Shown one piece after another: positions 25,467 to 48,909 of a stretch of DNA of 48,909 bases. A model generated the notes under the pieces. The model was not told the origin of the DNA. It saw nothing but the letters and a program-made list of their open reading frames with translations, and ran no database searches. Each line of letters opens with the position of its first letter. Within the stretch, counting starts at the first letter, position 1. A program made the position numbers and the translations under genes. The DNA comes from Ramazzottius varieornatus (taxonomy: Eukaryota > Animalia > Tardigrada), in contig BDGG01000003.1 of assembly GCA_001949185.1 (NCBI GenBank), positions 1 to 48,909 on the forward strand, given 5' to 3'.

Positions 25467-28092
25467 ATGCAGATTCGTGTGAATTTATTCCTCCTCATTC
25501 AAATTCTCGCAGGACATCACCTCCTTGTGTACGGAGAAACTCAATCCCCAGAAGCCCTGTTTTGTCAGAAGCTCCACATCTATCGCTACACATTACGCGT
25601 CAAAGACCCGGTCCCCATCTTCCTGGAAGCCACTCTGGGTGAAACCCTGGAGATTCCTTGTCCGTTGTGTATTGACAACCCCAAACAGCCAGCCAACTGG
25701 TTTGTGCAACGTCATACTGCTAAGTTCGAAACAACTCCACCGTACCTCGTCAAGGACGACAACCTTCTGAAACTGGAGAGGGGTATTTACCCTCCTGCCA
25801 ACACTTCTGTCGAGGAGATCACCGACGACCCTTTCACCTTCGACGAGTTCAACCGGATCTTCGTGCAAAAGAGCAACAACCTTGTCATCCGGAACCTCAG
25901 TGGTGAGTTTGAGCAACGTCCTTGCACAAGCGTATCAATAGGTATAAACGTGATACGTGTAGAACGCGTGACGTAGAGCTCGCGATCATCTTCCAGAATG
26001 CAGATCCAAAGCTGCAAGAGGAGACGTCGTCATGCGGGTGTTGCTCTGAATACCGTGGCTCTGGATTCCTGCCTGCTGTCGTAAAGAGCCAGCTTTGTTT
26101 TGGTGGTTAACCAATATATCGGTCTGGCCCTTGGGCGAAAAAAATTCAAAATACTGTAAACAGTGTGAAAAACTTCCTTGGAGTTGGAGCTAAAGTTTTT
26201 CTTCCGTTTGTCAACGCGCTGAGTTGAAACGCACTACAAGAGGAGGGGGAGTGTTAGCGGGTAACGCGCAACACATGCGGAAGAAAGAGAACTAACCAAC
26301 TCGCAATTTTTTCCGAAAGATACCCCTCGAAAAGTGACAATTTCAATCTTTCGAAACCTAAGTACAAGCTCCTTGCGCCTGCAACCAGACTGGACAACCG
26401 TAGGTTTTAACGGTCAACCGAAGGTCCAAGAAGCAACAGCTGTGTCGATTCGAAGCCGTTTTTACTACGTATTTGTAGTGGTTTACTTTAGTGAGTGATC
26501 TGGGACTATACACCTGCAAAGTCGCCGCTACGAAAGAATCCAACGGCTTCCTGTACTACGTTCGAGGTCTCATTCACAAAGACCCCATTATCCTTCCGCT
26601 CGACAACGAGACCTATGGCTTCACCGGGAAGAAGTCACTGGATCTGGCTTTCAAGCCGCGACCACACAGCCCTCCAATCAAGATTCAGCTCGTCCACGTC
26701 GACCTGGTCCCACAAGCATGGTCGGAGTGTACGTCGTGTGGAGATATCGCCGGCCAACAAGAACAGCTGCTGGAATGCCGAGTCAAGTTTGTCTATCCTC
26801 AAGGTGATCAAGATGAGTTCAGGAGACGCTACGCTGCACTAGGCTCGGAAGGTCTGGGCAACATCGAGCGGTACCTTGCCTCGATGAATCGAAAGTTCAT
26901 GGCGGACTACGAAGAGAAGATGACCATGGTTGGTCTGTTGCGAGCCTGTGTCTTGACGGGCATGTCGGATACGCGGAGGTTTCAGCAATGCCAGGAAAAG
27001 ATTTACTATCAGGACGATCTCGGTTTCAAGAACGGGACAAGCTGCAGGAGCCTGCTCCACCTAAATTGGTAAGACGACACTCTGCGCAACCGGTGAGATA
27101 CTTTGGTATTGGAGATATCATAGCTGCATACAAGTCGTCGCTATGGATTAACGGTGCGCTGTATGCAGGTGCACAAAACACTAAATAGACACTTGCTAAG
27201 TAAACACCTGCATGCCCGTTCACCGCAGAGATCGTGTACTATACTGTATGCAGGTTTGCAGACGTTCTTTATGGACTGGTCGGATGCTGTGACGGTTACT
27301 CTGTAGCGAAGTTACTCAAATTAATCGTCGAAAGTCGTGTTTCAGGTGGACATACGAAGCAGGAAAAGAAGAGATCATTTTTCCGCCACCGCAGCTCATC
27401 GGCGGGGTACTTCGCTCCCGAACGTGCAAGGTCCCGTGCCCCGTCGACGAAAGTGGCAAAGTCGTGGGTCTGGCCGCGAAGAAGGTGAAAGCGAAGAAGT
27501 TCCTCAAACGTCGTGGTCTCAACCTGAAACTCATCCGACAGAAGCAAAAGAAAAGAAAGACCGCCATACGGAAACCCAAAAGACATGTCATCAACGAGTT
27601 CGCCGGTACTTCGATCAAGCTCAGCTGCCCGACGGCCAAGATGGATAATGTACTCTTGTGGAAAAACGGAACGCTGGACTTGAACCCATACTCCATCGGC
27701 GAGGAAAGCGGAGGAAAAATCACGTACATCAACAATCTAGTGTTGTATATTCGTAAGCTGACCAAATACGACTCTCAAGTTTACAGGTAAGCCACACTCA
27801 ATTCCTGTTACACTGATGTAATGTTGGCCTTTTTTCTACGCGGGGTTACAGTTGTTGGCAAGAGGATCAGCTGAAAGCGGAAGTGGAAATCAAAGTGGTC
27901 AAGCCCAAAGAGGCGCCACCGGACTTGAGGGTTGCGCTGTTGTACTTGGCGGTGGGCCTCGCCTTCGACGTCCTGATCTTTCTCGCCTTGATGGTGGTTC
28001 GGCATCGACAACGGAAAGCGGTTCGGATGAAAGGCTACAAAGAACTTTACGATGATACAACCGTACAGAAAAACATACCAGTAAAGCAATAA
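25467..28092 (+). CDS. FAM187A-like single-pass Ig-domain membrane protein
   Basis: Signal peptide; Ig domain (LEIPCPLC...W...LVIRNLS|VSDLGLYTC); Cys-rich WSECTSCG...RTCKVPCP; second Ig domain (IKLSCP...W...LYIRKL...YSCW); TM helix VALLYLAVGLAFDVLIFLALMVV; short tail. Confidence 0.7.
27122..27255. repeat. Family B inverted motif pairs (two units) in an intron of the Ig gene
   Basis: AGCTGCATAC-N29-GTATGCAGGT (27122-27170) and ACCTGCATGC-N30-GTATGCAGGT (27206-27255). Confidence 0.75.
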
Positions 28093-28185
28093 CCCCATCG
28101 GATGGGGTCTTGACTTTTGCCAAACTGGTCGAACAGAACCCATGCGGGATTTTTAGTGCCAAAGAAATTACTGAAATGAAGAGAA

Positions 28186-28823
28186 GCGATGCTTGAGTGT
28201 CTGCGGGTCGTTTGAAGATGGACTTCACACTGGGCTGTTTACGAGTTGTCGTCGAGCAAACTGTGATGGTGGTGCGTTGTGAGTGGAAGAATGGGCCATT
28301 GTTCGCCAATGGACGAGTAATGAAGTTGGTGTTGAACGATTTGCCATGGCCGTGTTTATTATTCGCCGACAAATAAGATGGAGAAGGTCGCCGATCGTAA
28401 ACAGTTTATTGGCCAGCTGACGCTCATCTCGACATTGCCGAAGAAAATGGCGAAGGGGGCACCACCTGCCGGCTCACAGCTTCGCTGCTTTGTCACGGTG
28501 TTGTAAATAGCCTGCGAGATTCAATTTGTTGAGAAGCGAAAAAGCTTGTCAGTACAGTCTTCGGTGAAATGGAATGTTAACGAAGAGCGCATGCTTGATT
28601 TGATGGATAGCGTGTAATGATGAGCTTTGGTTGCTGGTTCGAATCGTTGATGGTACAGAACAACCTGTGATTAACAGCTATTAAAGTCACCTTCGCCCAT
28701 TCAGCCACTTTATTATTCTGCCATACGACAAGACCGTGCGGCATATTTGTGATCAAATAGTCGCTGGACTACTTTGCAAAAGTACCAGTAGCCAGGGACC
28801 ACCCTGGCGTTCGTTGCATCTTG
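28186..28823 (+). repeat. Inverted repeat block A (partner 36141-36803)
   Basis: Reverse-complement match. The outer half is diverged with indels; the inner ~310 bp has only a few mismatches. Confidence 0.95.
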
Positions 28824-29029
28824 AAATGTCGAAACACGAACTCCATCCGACTGGCTTATCACTGTAACCAAGAAATAATTTTGGAACCACAAGTCTTGTG
28901 GGAATATTGAATCGAACAGACGGAGCTCTGGAGAACGCGAGGGCCGCGAGTCCACCACCTAACCTCAAATTTCCCTTCCAAATTCGCTAGTCCAGAATAG
29001 ACTGATTATTAACAGCAGTGTGGTTTGAA

Positions 29030-29322
29030 ATTATCGAACAGATCTTGTTATCGCCTTCACATATTTCTGTCAAGTTTTATTGACTGATGGTTATTTGAGA
29101 AACCCTGCCGCTGATTTGGCCAAACAAGGTGGCAAGTTGTGGACGGTGTTAACGTGTGAGAACCTCCGCAGGATGCCACCCAATCTCCTTTTTCTCTTGT
29201 CGTGCTGATTAATTAAACACTTAGCTCGTTAGTGGCCACCCACATTTAGTGCTGCATTAACTTTCACTAGACATGACAAGATCTACATCTCTTGAACGCT
29301 TCTTCGGGTCACGCCAATTAAG
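29030..29322 (+). repeat. Inverted repeat block D (partner ~35656-35945), diverged
   Basis: For example ccctgccgctgatttggcYaaacaaggtggcaagttgtgga is shared. Roughly three-quarters identical by eye. Confidence 0.85.
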
Positions 29323-29819
29323 GTGATCCTTCGGACCCGAAAGGCTTGTAAATGCCGATTTTAGAAATATTGTACAAATAAAACAAGCCTTCCTCTGTCA
29401 ATCTACCCTGTCAGAATGTAAGTTGATATACTGTAATCGAAAAAGTTGAGGACTATATCTACTGAAGGTGCCTCGACGAGGAAGTTCGGTGCGTCTAAAT
29501 CTAGTGAATAATGCCTACGACGGCAGAGAGATGTATCGGAGCACTGACTATCTACCTCAATGGCCAATGCCTACTTATGACTTGGGCACATAGGTATCAG
29601 CCAGCGGTGTATGTACAGTATTTGGCTTTGACTTGGGAGACAATGCGATGAAGACGTTGATGGTGCAATTAACACCTTATGAAATACAAATGCGTGGAAA
29701 CTGACCTAGTCAGCCGGTCAGTCAGCACTGAAAAGAAGGAAGTAGAAGAGACAAGATAAACAGCAATCTCTTTATGCTCTCATCCCCAAAGGTCGGGTCG
29801 ACCCTCAGACCTCAACCGA

Positions 29820-29975
29820 GTCCCGTCACCGACACAACAGTGGTACCATACGGTTCGGACAGACAGAGTCGGACTGACCACTGTCTGACCAACGTGTGAT
29901 AACGGCCAACAGCTCATTTGATTCACAATTGACCTATTCAACCAGATGCATAATTTGACCAACACTTGGTCGACA
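29820..29975 (+). repeat. Inverted repeat blocks E (29820-29870, partner ~35595-35640) and B (29880-29975, partner 33920-34015), fused
   Basis: B has one mismatch in ~95 bp. E is a short diverged match (tcaccgac..aacagYggta..gacWgagtc). Confidence 0.85.
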
Positions 29976-30260
29976 CCGCCACCACGATATGTATTTAGCT
30001 AACAGCTGGCTTCCAGCTAATACATACATCGTGCCACCCCCATTCAATCGTTCTACGACAAACCTTGAGTCCACCGTCCGAAAAAGACAACAACATCCGT
30101 TCCACGTACAGTGGTGTCTTCGAGGAAGCCAGTCTTCCCCCGGGTTTTGTAACTGCGAACTCGTTTCTGGTACGAGAATCTACCGGCTTACGGGGAACAC
30201 CACAAGGAAACCTGAACCACCGAAGGTTAAAATGAGTTTCCGCGCACTTGACACACCGAG

Positions 30261-30702
30261 TACAATTACATATTTTGCTTGTCAAAGTCGAGATGGGAGC
30301 TTTGTAAACTGTGAAACATAAGGCGCGAGATGTCGAGCACAGCGTGACACTCGATTTGGCATTTGGTCAGCGCAATAAGCATTCGCAGAAGGGGGTCTTT
30401 TCTACACAACCACGACCCTCTTTGACACTTTAAACATTGCCATTGTATCACGTCAACAATTTCCCAACGCACCTTTGACTTTTTCTGTTTGGCTGACACG
30501 ACCGTATTCCGTGTTACATGATGACGCTCCACTTGAAACTTGCCACCTTCCTTCCTTCCTCGTTGCATTGTCTCGCGATCACTTGTCATAACTTCCCTCT
30601 GACCGTCAATTATCCATTTGATCTATGGGGAATAATATCCGCCTTTTTCTTCCTTCTAACTCGAGCAACCCCATCATTACGTGCCATAATCCGCATTCCT
30701 TT
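30261..30702 (+). repeat. Inverted repeat block C (partner 33254-33688, in T-box intron 2)
   Basis: Core 30278-30634 appears identical to the reverse complement of 33315-33671; edges are diverged. This produces the twin MTSDRETMQ ORFs in the track. Confidence 0.97.
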
Positions 30703-31011
30703 AATACTACGGAAAACTACTGCACGAATGACACCTTGCGGCGTTTGAGTGCGACTGCGGATACGTTGCCCGCACGCGATCACCAGATCCGTCACAGATG
30801 ATTCTTTAGACATCTGTCCATTTTTCGTCTTCTGTGCATCTTTTATCAGAATACTGTTCTGTTTTCTGCAGAGGAAATACACCGGTGCAAGAGTTTCGGA
30901 TAAAATAATATTGCAACTTTAATCCGACAAACGCAGACTGTGGACAGGAGACACAAACGACAGATAAATCATAATTCCCACAATCAGCTTATATTTTAGC
31001 CTTTTCGAATT

Positions 31012-34000
31012 TTAGCACTTTCGTTTTGTTGCACTCTGTAGAGCGATGTCATTCTGCCGCGCTTGTTCCAGCTGCAGGTTGTCGTTGACGGTACTCTGGA
31101 ACAACTGGCGTGTGCAGTATGCAGCGTAGGCCGCCTGCTGTTGTGACAGATGCTTGGAGAGATCGAGAACCGAGTCGTTGGGCATGATCCGCTGGTCAGG
31201 TAGCGGGAAACCGCTCCTGGCTGACCATTGTTGCAGGAACTGTAGGGGAATAGAGGGTGCGCCGAAGAGTGAGGAGTTGAACAGAGGTACACCATCCGGT
31301 GTCATACACGGAAGTGACATCATGGAGGAGTAGGGTGGAAGTTTCATGGCGCTGTCCATTTTGTTGAACTGCAAGCTTTGGATGGAGCCGAGATGCGACT
31401 GGTAGTGCTCTTGCATCGAACATTCCCTGAAAACGGAAACTAATTCGTTAATATCGTTAGACTGACTTCTTCCCGATGAATAACACTTTTGATGTTTCGG
31501 AGAAAATTTTTCTTGACGTTGTTGACTTGGACAACATCATTATCGTCAAATTAGTATGGAATAGTTTTGCGACAGGACGTTGACTGGGAATGGAGGACAG
31601 CAAGTGTGAAACGAGGTTATTTAGAACAGACAACGGTGCTAGCTTAACATCGCCGCCCTCCTGCAAGTTGAGACAAAAACTCTGCCCAGATCGCAACTAG
31701 CCTGACACCAATGTTTCGAAGTACAGGCCAGTGGTCACTCGTCACTGAACTCGACAGCGGATCCGCAAGCGGAAACGAAGGTCAACGAGGCCCCGGGGCC
31801 AGAACTCACGGCTTATAGCCGTTTTTACCTCTCTGTACTGTTTCCTGTTTAGTATCGTCGTATCAAAAGTCTGACGTTTCGACGACTTTCCCCCGAGAGG
31901 GGTTCAATAAATCAAGAGAAGAACTGTATGAAAATGACTTGCTGGCTCTTCTTTAATGGGTTTTTTTATCGAGGTTAAAAATATCAGGGACGACGGCCGG
32001 TGGTCTTCGTCAAGATTATTTATGTTGGTGCTTGATGTGGCTCGTTAATTTCACAGTTGGAACACGAAGTGGCAGTCACGCTGATAAATCTCCAAGGCGA
32101 TCAAAAGTCGGCTTGTGACTCTGACGGTGTTGTCGTTCTGGATTGTTAAGCACTTTTGACACAAGGACTACTTGTGTGGTACAGTTTGCTGGGAAGGACG
32201 GGGCACTGGCTGTTCGGTCACGACTGATCGCTCAGAAATGAGGGTGTTTGTGAGAGCGGCAATTAAGGGGAAGCATGGTGATGCGTCAAAGCGATATCAT
32301 TGCTTGTGTAAACATCAACTGCCTTGCACTGTAATGAGATCTTGGCTGCATGACACTTGATCGCTTTCCACTGGGGTTATTCGATCGAGAAGACAAGTGC
32401 CCAGCCTGTGGGATGCCTTGCTCATGTCATGTCTTGTCAAATGTCCGCGTGTAAAGTGTCAAAATATTTCTACATCTAGACAAAGCCCACCTTTCTCGCT
32501 CCATGTCGGTAAAGACACGCGTCGAATCGCGAAAGCCTTTGGCGAAAGGGTTGCAGTCAATCTTCATTTTCGTGATCTATAATGAAACGCGGAGTGTTAT
32601 ATATTGATTCAGCAGAAGAATTTTCGACAAGCGGAAGTTGAGCTGTTTTGGAGCAGCCTTTCTTACCAACTGATTCTGGTACGCGGTGACAGAATAGAAG
32701 GCGCATTCAGGAAAGGAAAATGTCCGGTAGTCAAAGTTGTCCAGATCGGAAATGGTCTTTAGGCTTTTCGGAGGCACTTCGCTTCCTTTCTCGACGTAGA
32801 CTAAATGGATCCTGGGCTGATATCGATGCATGGAGTTGAGAACAATCTGCAATACAGTATGACCATTTGAACTTTCCCAGACTTTTTTCCATCGACATTC
32901 AGTACAACTTACATATCCAGGTTTGTTGACTTCCGTATTGGTCAGCTTGACTTTCTCAAAGCTGATGATCTGCTTGCGCAACTGTTGCGGGGTGAAGGGC
33001 GAGTCAGGGTGGAGGTACAGCTTGGTGTGATGGGGTGGATCGCCCTTGCCTGCCACGAGCCACGAGGAGCGGTGGTAGGCGTAGCGGTAACGCTTGCTGT
33101 CGACACTGACAATGTCCAAGTACAGTAGGTACGAGCCTTCTTCGGCTAGTCCCGTAAAGGATGAACGTAAAGTTGGAAACATCCTCCTGGAAAATAGGTA
33201 TGTATTTTGAATTACCGGCGTGACATGTTACGCAATAAACTCTCGTGTTGGGAAAAGGAATGCGGATTATAATGATGGAGTTGCTCGAGTTAGAAGGAAG
33301 AAAAAGGCGGATAGTATTCCCCATAGATCAAATGGATAATTGACGGTCAGAGGGAAGTTATGACAAGTGATCGCGAGACAATGCAACGAGGAAGGAAGGA
33401 AGGTGGCAAGTTTCAAGTGGAGCGTCATCATGTAACACGGAATACGGTCGTGTCAGCCAAACAGAAAAAGTCAAAGGTGCGTTGGGAAATTGTTGACGTG
33501 ATACAATGGCAATGTTTAAAGTGTCAAAGAGGGTCGTGGTTGTGTAGAAAAGACCCCCTTCTGCGAATGCTTATTGCGCTGACCAAATGCCAAATCGAGT
33601 GTCACGCTGTGCTCGACATCTCGCGCCTTATGTTTCACAGTTTACAAAGCTCCCATCTCGACTTTGACAAGTGAAATATGTAATTGTAGCCGTTCGAACT
33701 GTCGGTGTGCCAAGTGCAGTAAAGATTTTGTACAATCTTCGAACTTGTGCATTCACGTTTCACTGAGATTTGCACCCAGGTACGAAGAAAAAAGTAAATT
33801 TCCGTTTACGACGAAGACGAAGACTAGTTTTCCCCTCAGAAAGCACCCAGTCAGTATGAAATAGTGTCAGTTCGGGTGGCGAACTCATGGCTCGCAGTGC
33901 TGTGATCGAATGATGGCGATGTCGACCAAGTGTTGGTCAAATTATGCATCTGGTTGAATAGGTCAATTGTTAATCAAATGAGCTGTTGGCCGTTATCACA

Positions 34001-34923
34001 CGTTGGTCAGACAGTAGGCAGTGTTTACACAATGGCCGCTAATACGCTTTCCGAGTTGCCTTCCTCCCTCATTCGCGCACTTCCTGATCCACTCTGTCTT
34101 TGAACAAGGACAATTGACGGCAGCCATTATCCACTGATTATTCTCGCAATTGCCGCATAACACATTCAGACTGTGTATCAATGCGCAAACGCCGGCCGAC
34201 ATTCGCCCAACCTTATCGCAACGCACCCACATCAACACAAACGATAATTTCAAGTGCAAAAAATTGTTTATGCGACAGCGACGCGTGTTAACCGTGCCAG
34301 CAACCCTTCATTCTTATCACTTAGCTGTTATAAATACGAAGTCGAGCTCCGAAAAACCTAACCTACCGGCCGCTTCTGGTGATGATCATTTCCGTGCCCA
34401 GCTCGTCAAATTTCTGCCATAGCTCCTTCGTTTCCAAATGACACTCGACTTTGGCCAGCTCCGGCGGTAGACATTTCTCGTATTCCGTGTTGGACACAAT
34501 CAGGTCGTCGCTTGTCGTGGTATCGGGGAACTCTGAGGTCGAGGAAGGTGTCGCAGACTTCCTGGTCTCAGCTGGCGACTCACATTTGATCAGTGGCGAA
34601 CTCTGTGGACTTTTGCTCGATCTGGCAACTGCAAATCAAGAACATGGACTTACGTTAGTCTATTTTCAAAGACAGTGGACTGTAATACTGTAGCGAACTG
34701 GCATGCACTGTGGCAAAGATGGGCACAGCAGTAATTTTTCCAAGGCCATACAATATTGGACATGAATTTAATTTCGTATACCGAATCAGGAGACTCAGAA
34801 ACGTTTTGCACTTGAAAATCAGCAACAAGACATGACATTGCATCAACGCGTACCTTTTTTCTTCTGGTCCTGTTCGGCCATAATTGCCTCGATGGAGAAA
34901 TCAGTCACCTTCCTTTTTGCCAT
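31012..34923 (-). CDS. TBX20: T-box transcription factor, Tbx20/midline/H15 subfamily; exons 34854-34923, 34367-34628, 32913-33186, 32667-32846, 32491-32576, 31012-31426
   Basis: N-terminal eh1 motif [36 protein letters not shown]; the Tbx20-diagnostic RYRYAYHRSSWLVAGK; LNSMHRYQPRIH; VTAYQNQ; KIDCNPFAKGFRDS. All joins are GT-AG and in frame. Confidence 0.93.
33254..34015 (-). repeat. Right-arm copies of blocks C and B inside T-box intron 2
   Basis: Reverse complements of 30261-30702 and 29880-29975. Confidence 0.95.
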
Positions 34924-35594
34924 AGTCTTTCCGCGAGCCAACAAACAATATAAAGCACGATGAATATCAGAATTTAAACAATCAAAAGATAGGGTGCGGC
35001 AACGGAGGAGTTTGTACGTAGCGCAGATCGATGGAAAAACAAGTGTTGAGCTGGCAAAGTTGGCTATCGACGTGGCGACAAGACGGCGGTTGGCGAACTG
35101 ATCGACTTGTCAAGACGAGATAATTACTAGCTATATGGTTCGTTCCAAAGGCGAAAAAGTAATTTCTTTGCCGTGAAAAGACGCTGCTGACGAACTGAGC
35201 TGGTGAGTTCCTTCAACACAGACAAGCCAAGGTTGTCTTCACTTCGCTAAGTCGCTTGATGACATCGCGCGCTGGATATTGTCGCTTTGTTCGTGGGCAT
35301 CAGTACACACTTGAAGGCGTGGTCGACCGAACCAACCAATGCAAAACAGTCGGTTTATGTTCCGCCCTTCCACGAGGAAGTTAGTCAAGCCTGAAATACA
35401 GTACGGCAATGGCAGAAGCGCCAAATCGATTACAACGACCAGTTGATCTAATACACTGGCGGCATCGTATTCAAGTCGATATATCGTCTGACTTGAATTA
35501 TGACAGTCACATTAATCATTGGCGTCATTCCGTTGAAGCGCAACATTTCCACAGATTGCATTTTGAGGTCGCGCCTGACTTTTATTACGTTTGA

Positions 35595-36803
35595 CTCAGT
35601 CCGTCTCAACTGTATACCGCTGTTGTCGGTGATGGAACCAAGTTGTCGTGTGAAGCGTTAATTGACGTGACCTGAAGAAGCGCATTTGAGAGATTCGCAT
35701 CTTGTTATGTCTTGTGGCAGTTCGGATGGCGCTAAATGTGGGTGGCTTCTAACGAGCTAAATGCTAAATTAATCAGCGCACGAAGAAGTTAAGGTGATCG
35801 GGTGACGTCCCGCAGAGGTTCTCACACGTAAAAACCATCCACAACTTGCCACCTTGTTTAGCCAAATCAGCGGCAGGGCTTTCTCAAGTAACCATTCGTC
35901 AACGAGAAAAATGTGTGGAGTCGTTAACAAGATCAGTTTGATAATAAACGATGACACTGCTAACTAATCTATTCTGCGCTAACGAGCCGGGAAGAAAATG
36001 GGCCAGAGTTTACTTTGTCTTCTATACTTACGACGACAATCACCCCGAGCGGCGATTGCCGAGAACTTTGTTTCCACTAGGCCTAAGAAACTCGAATTTT
36101 GAGAGCTCTTTAAAGTTCCGTCGGTTTTCAGGATGACGTGCAAGATGTAACGAACGCCAGGGTGGTCCCTGGCTACTGGTACTTTTGCAAAGTAGTCCAG
36201 CGACTATTTGATCACAAATATGCCGCACGGTCTTGTCGTATGGCAGAATAATAAAGTGGCTGAATGGGCGAAGGTGACTTTAATAGCTGTTAATCACAGG
36301 TTGTTCTGTACCATCAACGATTCGAACCAGCAATCAAAGCTCATCATTACACGCTATCCATCAAATCAAGCATGCGCTCTTCGTTAACATTCCATTTCAC
36401 CGAAGACTGTACCGACAAGCTTTTTCGCTTCTCAACAAATTGAATCTCGCAGGCTATTTACAGCACCACAAGATAATATGCAATCGTGACAGAGCAGCGA
36501 AGCTGTAAAGCCGGCAGGTGGTGCCCTCTTCGCCATTTTTCTTCGGCAATAGCGAGATGGACATCAGCTGGCCAATAAATTGCTTACGATCGGCGACCTT
36601 CTCCATCTTATTTTGCCGGCGAGCATAAACACAGCCATCGTAAAGCGTTCAACACAAATTCGATTATTCTTCCATCGATTGTCAATTGTCCATTCTCCCA
36701 TTCAAAACCAAACCTACCACCATCACGGTTTACCCGACGACAACTCGTAAACAGCCCAGCGTGAGACTCATCTTCAAACGACCCCGCAGATGCTCAGCAT
36801 CGC
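35595..36803 (-). repeat. Right-arm copies of blocks E, D and A upstream of the T-box gene (candidate cis-regulatory DNA)
   Basis: Reverse complements of 29820-29870, 29030-29322 and 28186-28823; they lie 0.7-1.9 kb upstream of the ATG. Confidence 0.9.
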
Positions 36804-42115: not shown

Positions 42116-45077
42116 CTACAACGACAGAGAAACAGCTAGAGCCGCGCCGAACGCCGCGTCTCTTCCCTCTTCTTCCTGGACCACAACCGGCAGCCCGAAG
42201 ACTTTCGTGACGTATCGGCACAACTGCGGGAATTTCTTGAACAACGACCCGGTCAAAACTATCCTGTCAATACTCGACTGTAGTAGAATCTGTGGAGGTA
42301 ACATTACAGCTAGGTTCTCAATCACACCCTTCAAAAATCCTCTCGTAACAAAACCTAGTTTTACGTTCTCTAGACTCAATCCTTCCACGCTCGCGCGAAG
42401 GTTTGAGTCGAATCGTTCAGCGTAAATTGTAGGTCGGATGGTTGGATCGTCAGATGTGGTCCAGTCTTCGCTGTTGGCTGCAGAAATTATCTTGGACCAG
42501 ATGACATCTTCGCTGAAGTCCAGGTCAAACTGTCCGATCCAGTCTAGGAGCGTCTTGACAAAGAACGTCAAGACGTTGCCGCCGTTGAGGGAGGGTGCGA
42601 CAACGAGCTCGCGACCGGAATGGGAAGGCTTACCGCTGGTGGAACTGAAGTAGGAGCGAACGTCACAAGCGGAAGGAATGACGAGGTCAGCGCGGGAACG
42701 TATGAAGGAAATCTGGGAGGAAGTGCTGAAATTTAACACTGCGAAGAAAGGAAAAATTAAGATTAAAAGAAAAGTCGGCAAATAACTTTGCCCAGCTCAT
42801 TTTCCCAAAGTGGTGCACGTCTTCAGTGTTACTGGCTTGAAGTGTGTGCCACTTAGAGAAGCGATCTCATTGTTTTCCCAAGTTATTTTCCCACGCTCTT
42901 AGACAATAACAGCGCAGAAGTGCGCCACTTGACATAACGATATGAGTGAAACGTCATTCCCAACGTCCCGAATCACTAAGCTGAAACTTTTCTGAGCGTA
43001 CCTGCGTCGGTGTCTTTCGCAACGGTGGCGATGAAAGAGGTCTGCAAATCGCCCATTGCTACACTGACTGGAATGGTCTGTCGATCTCGGTTCATCCCGT
43101 GGAAGCTGGATCCTGGTCGGAGAACTCCGAGTATTGTGGTGTTGCAAACGAGGGGAAGAAGACCCACCGGAAACTGGTTTTCTGTCAAACTGCAACGGAC
43201 TGAGTCTGTCATGTTCAAATTACACAAATTAAAAGGTCAGTAAATCAGCTATTTTGAACTTACATTTTGGTGTTCCAAGACCTGCTATGCCGATCGAAAA
43301 ATCCCCAAGACTCAGCATTGTGCGGAGAGATCACTGCGGATTTCGAGTTCGTCAGCAAGCAAGCTATGAAGTCCATAATGGTTCCTGCTTCTGAATAGTA
43401 CTCCAGCACTGCGGGATCATTCTTTTGCAACCAGAAGAGCGAACAGCTTCCGTACCCTGAAAAGGCATAAGTTTTCCAACGAGAGAAGGACTCCAGACGG
43501 CCATTTCATGTCATGTCATATGCCGTCATGTCGTGCCACAGGCCCACAGCCCAGCATTACAATTACATGGTCACACTAACATTACAGAAATCCGGGTAGG
43601 ACTTAACTTAGCAGTCCTTATAGCCTTCAAGAAATCTTCCCGTACATCCCACTGACGTCCTAGAGGAAGCTTTCGATTACTTGGGCCTTCGACATGCTAC
43701 ATGACTGGGCTGCCTGGGCGGGTGGGCCGCAGACCCTGCTCAAAAGAGAAGCTTCCCGAATACTGTATGAAAATTGGATTTGCGGTAAAATCATAAACCG
43801 ATTTTTGATGTGTTAAGTCGCGTGGTTTGATACAGTTGGTATCAGGTCAATAAACCACGTGTTGCGCTTTGATATGCGCCACTGTAATGGGAATTTTTGG
43901 TTTACAGGGCGTTTCCAGAGTGGATGACTATGCTGGATAAAAACAGGGTTCGTAGCCGCCGTGTTGCTTACATGGAGGAACCAAAGCCTGAAGAGCTGTG
44001 TGATGACAAAAGCTGTGAACATACAAGGTGGTCAAAGTAGGTCGTGTTGGAAGCAGCAGAAAATCATATTCGTCATTTCGTTATCGTTGGCATGGTCCAG
44101 AGGCGGCTGGAGGTATCAAGAAGGTACGCAATTTGGCCCTTTTTCTACGAAGATGCTTGTCAGGTCCGTGCTCGGCACAACCTTGACTGATAATCCATAA
44201 AAATTTCGTGGAAAAAGGGCCAAATTGCGGACCTTTTTAATACATCCAGCCGCCTCTAGGTCATGGTCCATTTCGGATATGGTAATCGACCCTTGGAAGT
44301 ACATGATGAATTGAGGAAGGTGACGTACGTTAGGTAACGCTTCGGGATTACTGAACACTGGCGCTAGCTGACTAGTGGGCAGCAGTGGCAAAAGCAGTTC
44401 TTGTTTGGAATCGATTAATATGATGGACTGCACGGTCATAATGCTCTTTACCCTAATGTCGATTTTTCATCGAAAGGACAAGCCGCGGGTTGCCAATTGT
44501 CATAAGCTTTCATCCATTTGATAAACTACTTACGTAGGCTCACGTGATGAAGACCCACCTGTTGCTAGCACTTGATCTGGTTGCGGCTTCGGTAGTGTTT
44601 CCAGGAAGTCCTTCGTGCAGCGCTGATCCTGCCAGGTGATCAGGTTCGAAAATTCGCAGATGTCCGAAAGAGCGGTGAATTTCGTCAGAGTGACATTGGA
44701 CCAGGCTGCTTTCCGCTTCCACAGCATCACCCCATGCTGTTGTCCGCAAATTCCGACCGCCTAAAAATGGAATTATTCTTGTGTGAATGCAAGCTAGCGG
44801 AACAGAAAAGTTTCCTTCGTCTACTTACGATAACGTTGGATAAAGTGTGAGGTCCAATTTCTGCTAGTAGGATGTTCAGAGCAGTCCATATTTTCTCAAC
44901 ATATTGCTCGCTGAAGCCGGGTGGTAGGTTTGGGACATCCGCGAAGGTTTTCTGGGAGTAGGATTGATTCGTCGCCACTCGCTTTGTTACCGCGTCGATA
45001 ACGGAAACTTTAACGGTGGTTGTGCCCAGATCGATGCCTAAAATCACTCCATGCTTCCGGTTCTGGCCACCTTTCAT
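42116..45077 (-). CDS. SHPK: Sedoheptulokinase (FGGY kinase family)
   Basis: LGIDLGTTTVKVS; GQQHG; NLITWQDQRC; GYGSCSLFWL; NAESWGFF; AMGDLQTS; NFSTSSQIS; PSLNGGNVL; PTIYAER; DAAFGAAL. Confidence 0.9.
42810..42928. repeat. Family A element plus a degenerate second unit in an SHPK intron
   Basis: GTGGTGCAC-N25-GTGTGCCAC (42810-42852); second right arm GTGCGCCAC at 42920-42928. Confidence 0.7.
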
Positions 45078-47804: not shown

Positions 47805-48909
47805 TCAAACGCCAAAGACTTTCTTGGCCAAAGCAGGCGGAAGTTGGTTTCGGATCATAGCTGGAGTTTGGATCACGTTGATGAGTTCTCCATCCGTTGA
47901 CAGCACACAACTCACCACATTCTGAAGAAAACAGAAGACCAAGATTGCCGAAACGAAACAGAAATCTCCCGGAATAGAAGCACTTCCTCTTCAGTCTGAA
48001 ACCACAATCAGGGACGTGGGCAAATCACATCCTCCAAACGAGCCAGGTCGTTACGTCAAGTGGCGCATATTTTCGAAAATTTTGGCCGAATATGTGCGCC
48101 ACTTGGAAAACGATCTGGCTCATTAATTGTGATTTGCCCACGTCCCATCTTATTTCCTGCAATTTTCTACCTCGTCGTAGTTCAGTTCCTTCTTGACTTT
48201 CCACATCTTTCCTTCCTTGACCAGAAGCACTCCAGCTTTCCAGTTATGCAGGACAGCCAAGTCTTCATGAACCGAACAGTTCGTGAAAGCCACCACTTCC
48301 TTCACTGCCTCTTCGCTTCCTCCTTCCATCACTATCCTCTGATATGACAGTGTATGAAGGTTGAAAGTCACCACGGTACCATCAGCATAAGCCAGTAGAA
48401 GATCTGCTTGTTTGTGAGTGCTGAGAGCCAGCGCTGTCACGATGGAGGTCGACTGTGAAGGCAGGATTGTTCTGTAGGAAGTCCTTCTCTGCTGCGCGCT
48501 TTCTTCGTCGTCGTCTTGGGCCATCACTACATCGCCCGAAGACTTCTCCAAATCGAAAACTTCAACCTTGTTTTTGGAAGTGACGATGGCGACAAAACGA
48601 CCGTTGGAAGAAAGCAGCCGGACCTTTTCATCTGAAAAACACAAATTCATGCAGTAACAGCGTTCAGTCAGCCAATCGATAGCGAATACACAAGAAAAAC
48701 TCACCCGGAAATAACGAGCAAATGTTCCTCTTGTCAACTACTGAAGCTGAATGTTCGCCGCTCGCTATCCACTTGAGCTTACAGTGGAAAACTTCGCTAG
48801 AATCAGCTACTACCAGTCTGCCCTCTTCGGAGAAGGTTAGGCTATCAACCGGAAGTGCGAAGATGTCGGTGGATTTCGAAGCCGGCACCAAATCGATGTC
48901 GACTTTGTC
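47805..48909 (-). CDS. UTP4: U3 snoRNA-associated protein 4 / cirhin, 3' part
   Basis: WD40-like strands (LPSQSTSIVTALAL...LLLAYADGTVVTFNL) and a last exon ending IRNQLPPALAKKVFGV*, matching the UTP4 terminal LPP..KK.FG motif. Confidence 0.75.
48060..48102. repeat. Family A 43-bp palindromic element in a UTP4 intron
   Basis: CAAGTGGCGCAT-N25-GTGCGCCACTTG. Confidence 0.8.

Follow-up and report, generated by a model that had tools for sequence, protein, structure and literature searches.

Tbx20 of the tardigrade Ramazzottius varieornatus stands between two stretches of DNA that mirror each other, and only one of the two contains exons. How did an exon-less mirror copy come to lie beside an intact developmental gene, and what keeps parts of it almost identical to their partners? 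The locus is found in the first 48.9 kb of contig C3 (BDGG01000003.1 of assembly GCA_001949185.1), the 48,909-nt stretch that was analysed and that is called the window below. Genome-wide searches covered 55,842,812 bases in 200 contigs. A first-pass annotation of the window had seen here a tail-to-tail duplicate of Tbx20 that lost every exon and kept its cis-regulatory blocks. The best reading of the locus is probably a different one: a single inverted partial duplication, a 1.57-kb deletion in the copy, and then gene conversion from arm to arm.

Two mirror-image arms surround a unique spacer

An inverted-repeat scan and self-BLAST of the Tbx20 locus place a left arm, 28186-30702, in collinear mirror order against a right arm, 36803-33254, so that two inverted homologous arms surround a unique spacer at one locus. 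A permissive alignment pairs 28186-29321 with 36803-35658, 29805-29870 with 35653-35593, and 29873-30702 with 34022-33254. The scan and BLAST recover A/a, D/d, B/b and C/c, and the alignment adds the short pair E/e. Together, these three comparisons bear out the mirror order of five block pairs, A-D-E-B-C facing c-b-e-d-a, that had been described at the first pass; the coordinates given then were right within a few bases, E and B being slightly longer. The parts of the palindrome are as follows, with divergence given as the Jukes-Cantor (JC) distance and strand where one applies.

28186..30702: left ("ghost") arm, 2517 bp, from the mirror alignment
28186..28476: block A1, diverged, JC 0.17; mirror of 36488-36803
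28497..28823: block A2, near-identical island, 323/327; mirror of 36141-36467
29030-29321, also delimited as 29038..29321: block D, about 80% identity, JC 0.20; mirror of 35945-35658
29322..29804: left-only insert, 483 bp long, separating D from E, whose counterparts d and e adjoin in the right arm
29805..29870: block E, 71% identity, JC 0.27; mirror of 35653-35593
29873..29984: block B, near-identical island, 107/112 (95.5%); mirror of 34022-33911
30261..30702: block C, near-identical island, 431/442 columns with a 357-nt perfect run; mirror of 33688-33254
30703..33253, minus strand: single-copy spacer, 2.55 kb, with Tbx20 exons 3-6 between 63 nt of intron 2 on one side and 119 nt of downstream sequence on the other
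33254..36803: right arm, 3550 bp, with intron-2 blocks c and b, the right-only segment, and upstream blocks e, d and a
34023..35592, minus strand: right-only segment, 1570 bp absent from the left arm, with the proximal promoter, exons 1 and 2, the intron between them and the start of intron 2

The gap that the left arm fills almost completely runs from the stop codon of a convergent neighbour (28090) to about 30821, where the Tbx20 mRNA ends.

The right arm belongs to an intact Tbx20 gene

The Pfam T-box domain is divided among three minus-strand open reading frames (ORFs). The best relative among protein representatives is a T-box protein of another tardigrade, Paramacrobiotus metropolitanus (XP_055343824.1), with 73% identity, and the matches that follow, from spiders, scorpions, Limulus, amphioxus and fish, are named TBX20. 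Domain and nearest named relatives both uphold the assignment to the Tbx20 family that had been made earlier. We obtained the exon map by placing the tardigrade relative on the window and inspecting splice sites, and the gene model was then searched exon by exon.

ATG about 34923 to 34864, minus strand: exon 1, with an eh1-like motif
34629 to about 34368, minus strand: exon 2, from relative mapping
33190-32913, minus strand: exon 3, followed by a 66-nt intron
32846-32667, minus strand: exon 4, from relative mapping
32576-32493, minus strand: exon 5, from relative mapping
31428 to the stop at 31012, minus strand: exon 6, with the mRNA end at about 30821

A spliced RNA contig links 32493 to 31428 and terminates at 30821. 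Intron 3 (32847-32912, 66 nt) is in frame and free of stops, and exons 3-4 read as one ORF of 216 amino acids.

On this map the right arm extends from upstream of Tbx20 through exons 1-2 into intron 2. Intron 2 contains blocks b and c, while e, d and a are located 650-1880 nt upstream of exon 1. The exon map thus agrees with the earlier description of the right-arm copies as the upstream region and intron 2 of the gene.

The left arm holds no recognisable coding remnant

The left arm is devoid of any recognisable T-box coding remnant, as had been noticed from the letters alone. In tblastn searches with the gene's own exon peptides, run as the first-pass annotation had proposed, nothing outside Tbx20 scores better than an expectation value (E) of 0.4, and the left arm gives no T-box match. 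A six-frame Pfam scan of the whole genome finds five T-box loci, with no second copy near Tbx20; on contig C3 only the true T-box exons match. Finally, a profile of 41 Tbx20 sequences reaches a best E of 2.2 in all frames of both arms; the same profile retrieves exons 1-5 with E values from 1e-86 to 0.02.

One candidate was rejected. Residues 270-340 of the Paramacrobiotus protein match A/a weakly (tblastn E 0.07 and 0.63; 0 of 200 shuffles). We judged this match to be due to chance, because the segment was chosen post hoc, the true exon 6 does not conserve the stretch and the profile finds nothing there.

Two features of the layout tell how the exons came to be missing. Beyond block C, no homology was found to exon 3 or to the 63 nt of intron 2 that precede it, so there is no need to suppose that exons 3-6 ever belonged to the copy. 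In addition, E directly abuts B on the left (29870/29873), whereas on the right a stretch of 1570 bp, which takes in the promoter through exon 2, separates e from b; one clean deletion therefore explains the missing exons. The claim that the duplicate lost every exon stands only in part: the promoter, exon 1, intron 1 and exon 2 (1570 bp) are indeed missing from the left arm, but exons 3-6 lie in the single-copy spacer and show no sign of having been duplicated.

Divergence between the arms is a patchwork

The A/a pair, made of A1 and A2 (28186-28823 against 36803-36141), is 88.8% identical over 667 columns, a figure that averages two very different halves. Indeed, JC distances fall into two classes across the palindrome: the three islands (327, 112 and about 430 nt) have values that are, in ascending order and not in order of position, 0.009, 0.012 and 0.046, against 0.17, 0.20 and 0.27 in the other alignable blocks. 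The weakest pair, E/e, is nonetheless collinear, with a local score of z=12 against shuffles. The segments 28824-29037 and 29985-30260 are nearly unalignable with their counterparts; a faint collinear similarity persists (z about 4), and their length is similar in both arms. No similarity was found between the left-only 483 bp and the right-only 1570 bp (z=-0.1). The only other genome match of the insert at 29322-29804 is a weak one, 69% over about 190 nt, at C1:203493-203683.

The longest identical run, 357 nt, compares with a maximum of 107 nt in 5000 permutations of the variable sites. By this test and by the two JC classes, the near-identity tracts of the Tbx20 palindrome exceed what uniform divergence would give. 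Since a perfect run of 357 nt lies beside blocks at JC 0.2, copy correction explains the pattern better than constraint does; from the alignments, near-identity appears to fit gene conversion better than it fits enhancer constraint or purifying selection. Retention of the near-identical blocks by selection is not sustained: islands of 99-100% identity, set beside blocks at JC of about 0.2 and nearly unalignable DNA, point to conversion.

The outer end of the left arm is a 3'UTR

Logan contigs of four runs were mapped to 28100-32420, that is, to the left arm and part of the spacer. The neighbour that converges on Tbx20 is a plus-strand gene with coding exons at about 25.3-28.09 kb, an ORF that ends at 28089 and a stop at 28090. 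Its product is membrane-protein-like and has no Pfam match; its last exon has a hydrophobic stretch. RNA contigs continue from this gene across A1 and cover the initial 130-145 nt of A2.

28093..28641, plus strand: 3' untranslated region (3'UTR) of the neighbour gene

A contig of run X4 at 28100-28625, with a depth of 151, extends 254 nt into the coding exon of the neighbour, and contigs of run X14 extend to 28641. RNA contigs from two studies assign the outermost 440-455 nt of the left arm to this 3'UTR. The outer end of the left arm is now the 3'UTR of the convergent neighbour gene. The earlier description of the arm as Tbx20's own non-coding DNA is overstated at the outer end of block A, which now belongs to the neighbour. 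RNA contigs represent this 3'UTR no less well than Tbx20 itself.

Between 28642 and 30820, B and C included, no RNA contig was found, though contigs cannot prove absence. Contigs of the two studies end at 30821 and 30887, and the end of the Tbx20 mRNA is 119 nt short of C. Intron 5 (31429-32492) is covered by RNA at about one tenth of exon depth in run X4. The intron-2 block C/c is without an RNA contig, which may be an effect of filtering or coverage. As to the right arm, the share of sampled words suggests little RNA beyond the exons, contig mapping having covered only 28100-32420.

A proposed history of the locus

We propose that one local duplication, in inverted orientation, took in the region upstream of Tbx20, its exons 1-2 and the greater part of intron 2, about 3.5 kb in all on the 5' side of the locus. 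The copy would have inserted where Tbx20 and its neighbour converge, in the gap that separates their 3' ends, leaving exons 3-6 as the single-copy spacer. Fold-back priming or template switching at a break would be expected to produce such a layout.

In a second step, one deletion of 1.57 kb would have taken the promoter, exon 1, intron 1 and exon 2 out of the copy, and about 480 bp of other DNA would have entered it between D and E. A long divergence may then have followed (JC 0.17-0.27, with two stretches almost beyond alignment), during which repeated non-crossover gene conversion, where homology sufficed, could have held three islands at 96-100% identity. The outer end of the copy would meanwhile have been taken over as the 3'UTR of the neighbour gene. 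The order of these events, the origin by fold-back or template switching, and conversion as the cause of identity are all what we infer; no regulatory role would need to be assumed for the copy.

Several points weigh against this history. Conversion is read from the comparison of one arm with the other in a single genome, so that concerted evolution of the arms is presumed. The islands show no excess of G+C over the diverged blocks, hence no signature of GC-biased conversion. Their edges meet nearly unalignable DNA, a pattern that very strong constraint on the islands alone could also produce. A whole-gene palindrome followed by two deletions would yield the same present structure. Finally, the orientation of the spacer is taken from the published Sanger/fosmid assembly and the intact exon order, because short-read contigs break inside the identical blocks.

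Alternative explanations

Among the alternatives, the one that survives best is that of the first-pass annotation, in which a complete tail-to-tail duplicate of Tbx20 lost all its exons and the selected cis-regulatory blocks remain as putative mirror-image shadow enhancers 3' of the gene. The left arm does come within 120 nt of the Tbx20 3' end, and its blocks were kept in order although the DNA between them is almost unalignable. Constraint in both copies could also be the reason why A1 and D retain about 80-85% identity next to near-saturated DNA. However, a whole-gene origin needs a second precise deletion, as neither the end of intron 2 nor exon 3 follows C. An unchanged run of this length next to blocks at JC 0.2 is unlike purifying selection on enhancers, and block A is transcribed in the 3'UTR of another gene. 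No T-box half-site (AGGTGT-type) occurs in any shared block, T-box autoregulatory sites being the only kind that was checked. Altogether, we find this explanation unlikely.

A variant combines conversion with function. The islands might be kept as a mirror pair for the sake of Tbx20, through conversion, either as duplicated putative regulatory modules that flank the gene on each side or as an inverted-repeat bracket around exons 3-6, acting through RNA looping or DNA inversion. This, too, seems improbable to us.

The near-perfect repeats might instead be selected as a nucleic-acid structure, an RNA duplex or a DNA inverted repeat. In the RNA form, c and b of intron 2 would pair with C and B in a read-through transcript, looping out exons 3-6 and leading to back-splicing, editing or hairpin small interfering RNAs (siRNAs). 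In the DNA form, the inverted repeat would let the segment of exons 3-6 invert as an off switch. The geometry is suggestive: an inverted repeat of about 430 nt, 98% identical and perfect over 357 nt, brackets exactly exons 3-6, with 63 nt between one arm and the exon 3 acceptor and 119 nt between the mRNA end and the other arm downstream of it. Such inverted-repeat geometry promotes circular RNAs (circRNAs) in other animals. On the other hand, RNA contigs end before B and C are reached even though intron 5 is covered, with the reservation on contigs made above. A2/a2 lies outside the Tbx20 transcript, so that pairing within one RNA cannot explain it, and neither a recombinase gene nor a recombinase site is evident. 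The two forms taken together have, in our view, only a small chance of being right.

An assembly artefact, with the inverted copy misjoined, haplotypic or wrongly polished, has to be weighed since scaffolding errors can create palindromes (a caveat made in PMC7953838) and short-read contigs cannot span the identical islands. The R. varieornatus assembly has 55.8 Mb in 199 nuclear scaffolds plus the mitochondrion, with an N50 of 4.74 Mb, and it was built from Sanger and Illumina reads with fosmid ends (PMC5034306, PMC11071193); artefacts of palindromic long reads or of amplification are inapplicable to such data. With differences of 15-25% over more than 600 nt, and large indels besides, the arms are two distinct sequences. 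Contigs of a 2016 DNA sample, which is possibly the source of the assembly and whose contigs were assembled independently, tile the entire left arm. Their depth is about 24 in the unique parts, equal to that of the flanks, and rises in the islands to 49 (A2), 36 (B) and 50-58 (C); they bridge every junction of unique and repeated sequence in the left arm. One of 308 nt is the right arm's own b-c interval. Full single depth in unique parts (not half depth) and double depth in islands argue against a haplotype copy, a collapsed repeat or a polishing artefact. In addition, a low-depth sample from 2020 yields a contig over 28100-29510 with zero differences. An artefact is thus very unlikely.

Least probable of all is that the arms are transposable-element copies or the terminal inverted repeats of one large element: a 200-kb sample of the genome is rich in local inverted repeats, and its sole long near-identical pair marks the ends of a piggyBac-like element, but every block of the Tbx20 palindrome has exactly two copies genome-wide, both at this locus, the ORFs of the arms have no Pfam domain, transposase included, the outer edges lack a target-site duplication, and the right arm holds exons 1-2 of a conserved developmental gene. 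The dispersed family that the first-pass annotation had named as the finding that would overturn it was thus looked for in 55.8 Mb, where the arms prove to be low-copy and locus-specific. At the block edges, junction microhomology is not readable either, and the interval 27.5-37.5 kb contains no Rfam family and no tandem repeats.

Other inverted repeats and genes of the window

The random 200-kb sample gave 14 inverted and 6 direct hits, with short local inverted repeats and small palindromes being common. Its long pair, C7:201363-201612 and 206518-206766, was considered as a second segmental palindrome and rejected. The two copies are 250 nt long, inverted, 99.2% identical and the only ones in the genome. 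They bracket a minus-strand ORF of 413 amino acids (2968-4209 of C7:200001-210000) with the piggyBac-type domain DDE_Tnp_1_7 (E 4e-49); the element is apparently single-copy, with long terminal inverted repeats. As the only long pair is a transposon, the sample gives no support for frequent segmental palindromes. A hedgehog gene within a patched palindrome was also looked for with Pfam models and not recovered in this way: hedgehog lies on contig C34, and the Patched model matches C8 only.

Smaller structures were seen as well. The window contains a self-palindrome of 136 nt at 48011-48146 (76%) and an inverted pair of 53 nt at 44099-44151 and 44205-44257 (91%). Small palindromes of 200-520 nt, at 73-80%, occur in several 10-kb samples: L011 (4176-4691), L017 (1931-2285, numbered within C7:200001-210000) and L024 (2147-2341).

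Further genes of the window are the following.

6.3-8 kb: CTNNBL1-like
12-15 kb: formate-tetrahydrofolate ligase/MTHFD1-like
18 kb: alpha/beta hydrolase
37.7-39.2 kb: translin, divergent from Tbx20
45.5-46.4 kb: C2orf69-like

Relation to known systems and significance

The palindromes of primate Y and X chromosomes and the gene palindromes of asexual animals likewise have inverted arms, a unique spacer and tracts of near-identity in an otherwise old structure. In contrast, the Tbx20 arms are far smaller (2.5-3.5 kb) and contain no intact gene; one of them lost its only exons, and their identity is patchy instead of uniform. A gene-based screen reported 4 palindromes with 22 genes in R. varieornatus (PMC7953838); screens of that type would miss the Tbx20 palindrome.

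Inverted duplications made by fold-back or template switching (PMC10622511, PMC10766186) have the same layout, with the inverted copy near its template and a single-copy spacer between. The Tbx20 copy differs from those events in being old and fixed in the germline, its junction microhomology no longer legible and its mechanism accordingly a proposed one.

With shadow enhancers the locus shares a second copy of a developmental regulator's upstream and intronic DNA near the same gene; here, however, the copies, at most putative enhancers, are inverted and partly 100% identical, and one block is the 3'UTR of another gene. With an unprocessed pseudogene it shares a partial copy of a locus without coding capacity, but the coding part was cleanly deleted once, and the non-coding flanks are recognisable, probably aided by conversion from the intact arm. 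With intronic matches that promote circRNAs, and with hairpin-RNA loci, it shares a long perfect inverted repeat that brackets internal exons; its distal arm, unlike theirs, lies past the mapped poly(A) end and is without an RNA contig.

As it stands, the mirror copy of Tbx20 is a structural curiosity. It would illustrate cleanly, on a small scale, how a partial palindrome of a gene locus can lose its coding part while non-coding patches stay identical through conversion from the intact arm, with part of the copy co-opted as the 3'UTR of another gene. It also advises caution, since near-perfect "conserved non-coding blocks" within one genome can be copy-corrected and not constrained. If the arms were functional, the locus would be well suited to testing duplicated regulatory DNA in so compact a genome; a tardigrade vector for in vivo expression is available (PMC9945988). 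In a broader and likewise improbable form of the functional reading, patchwork palindromes around developmental regulators would be a recurrent product of break repair in this desiccation-tolerant, parthenogenetic genome.

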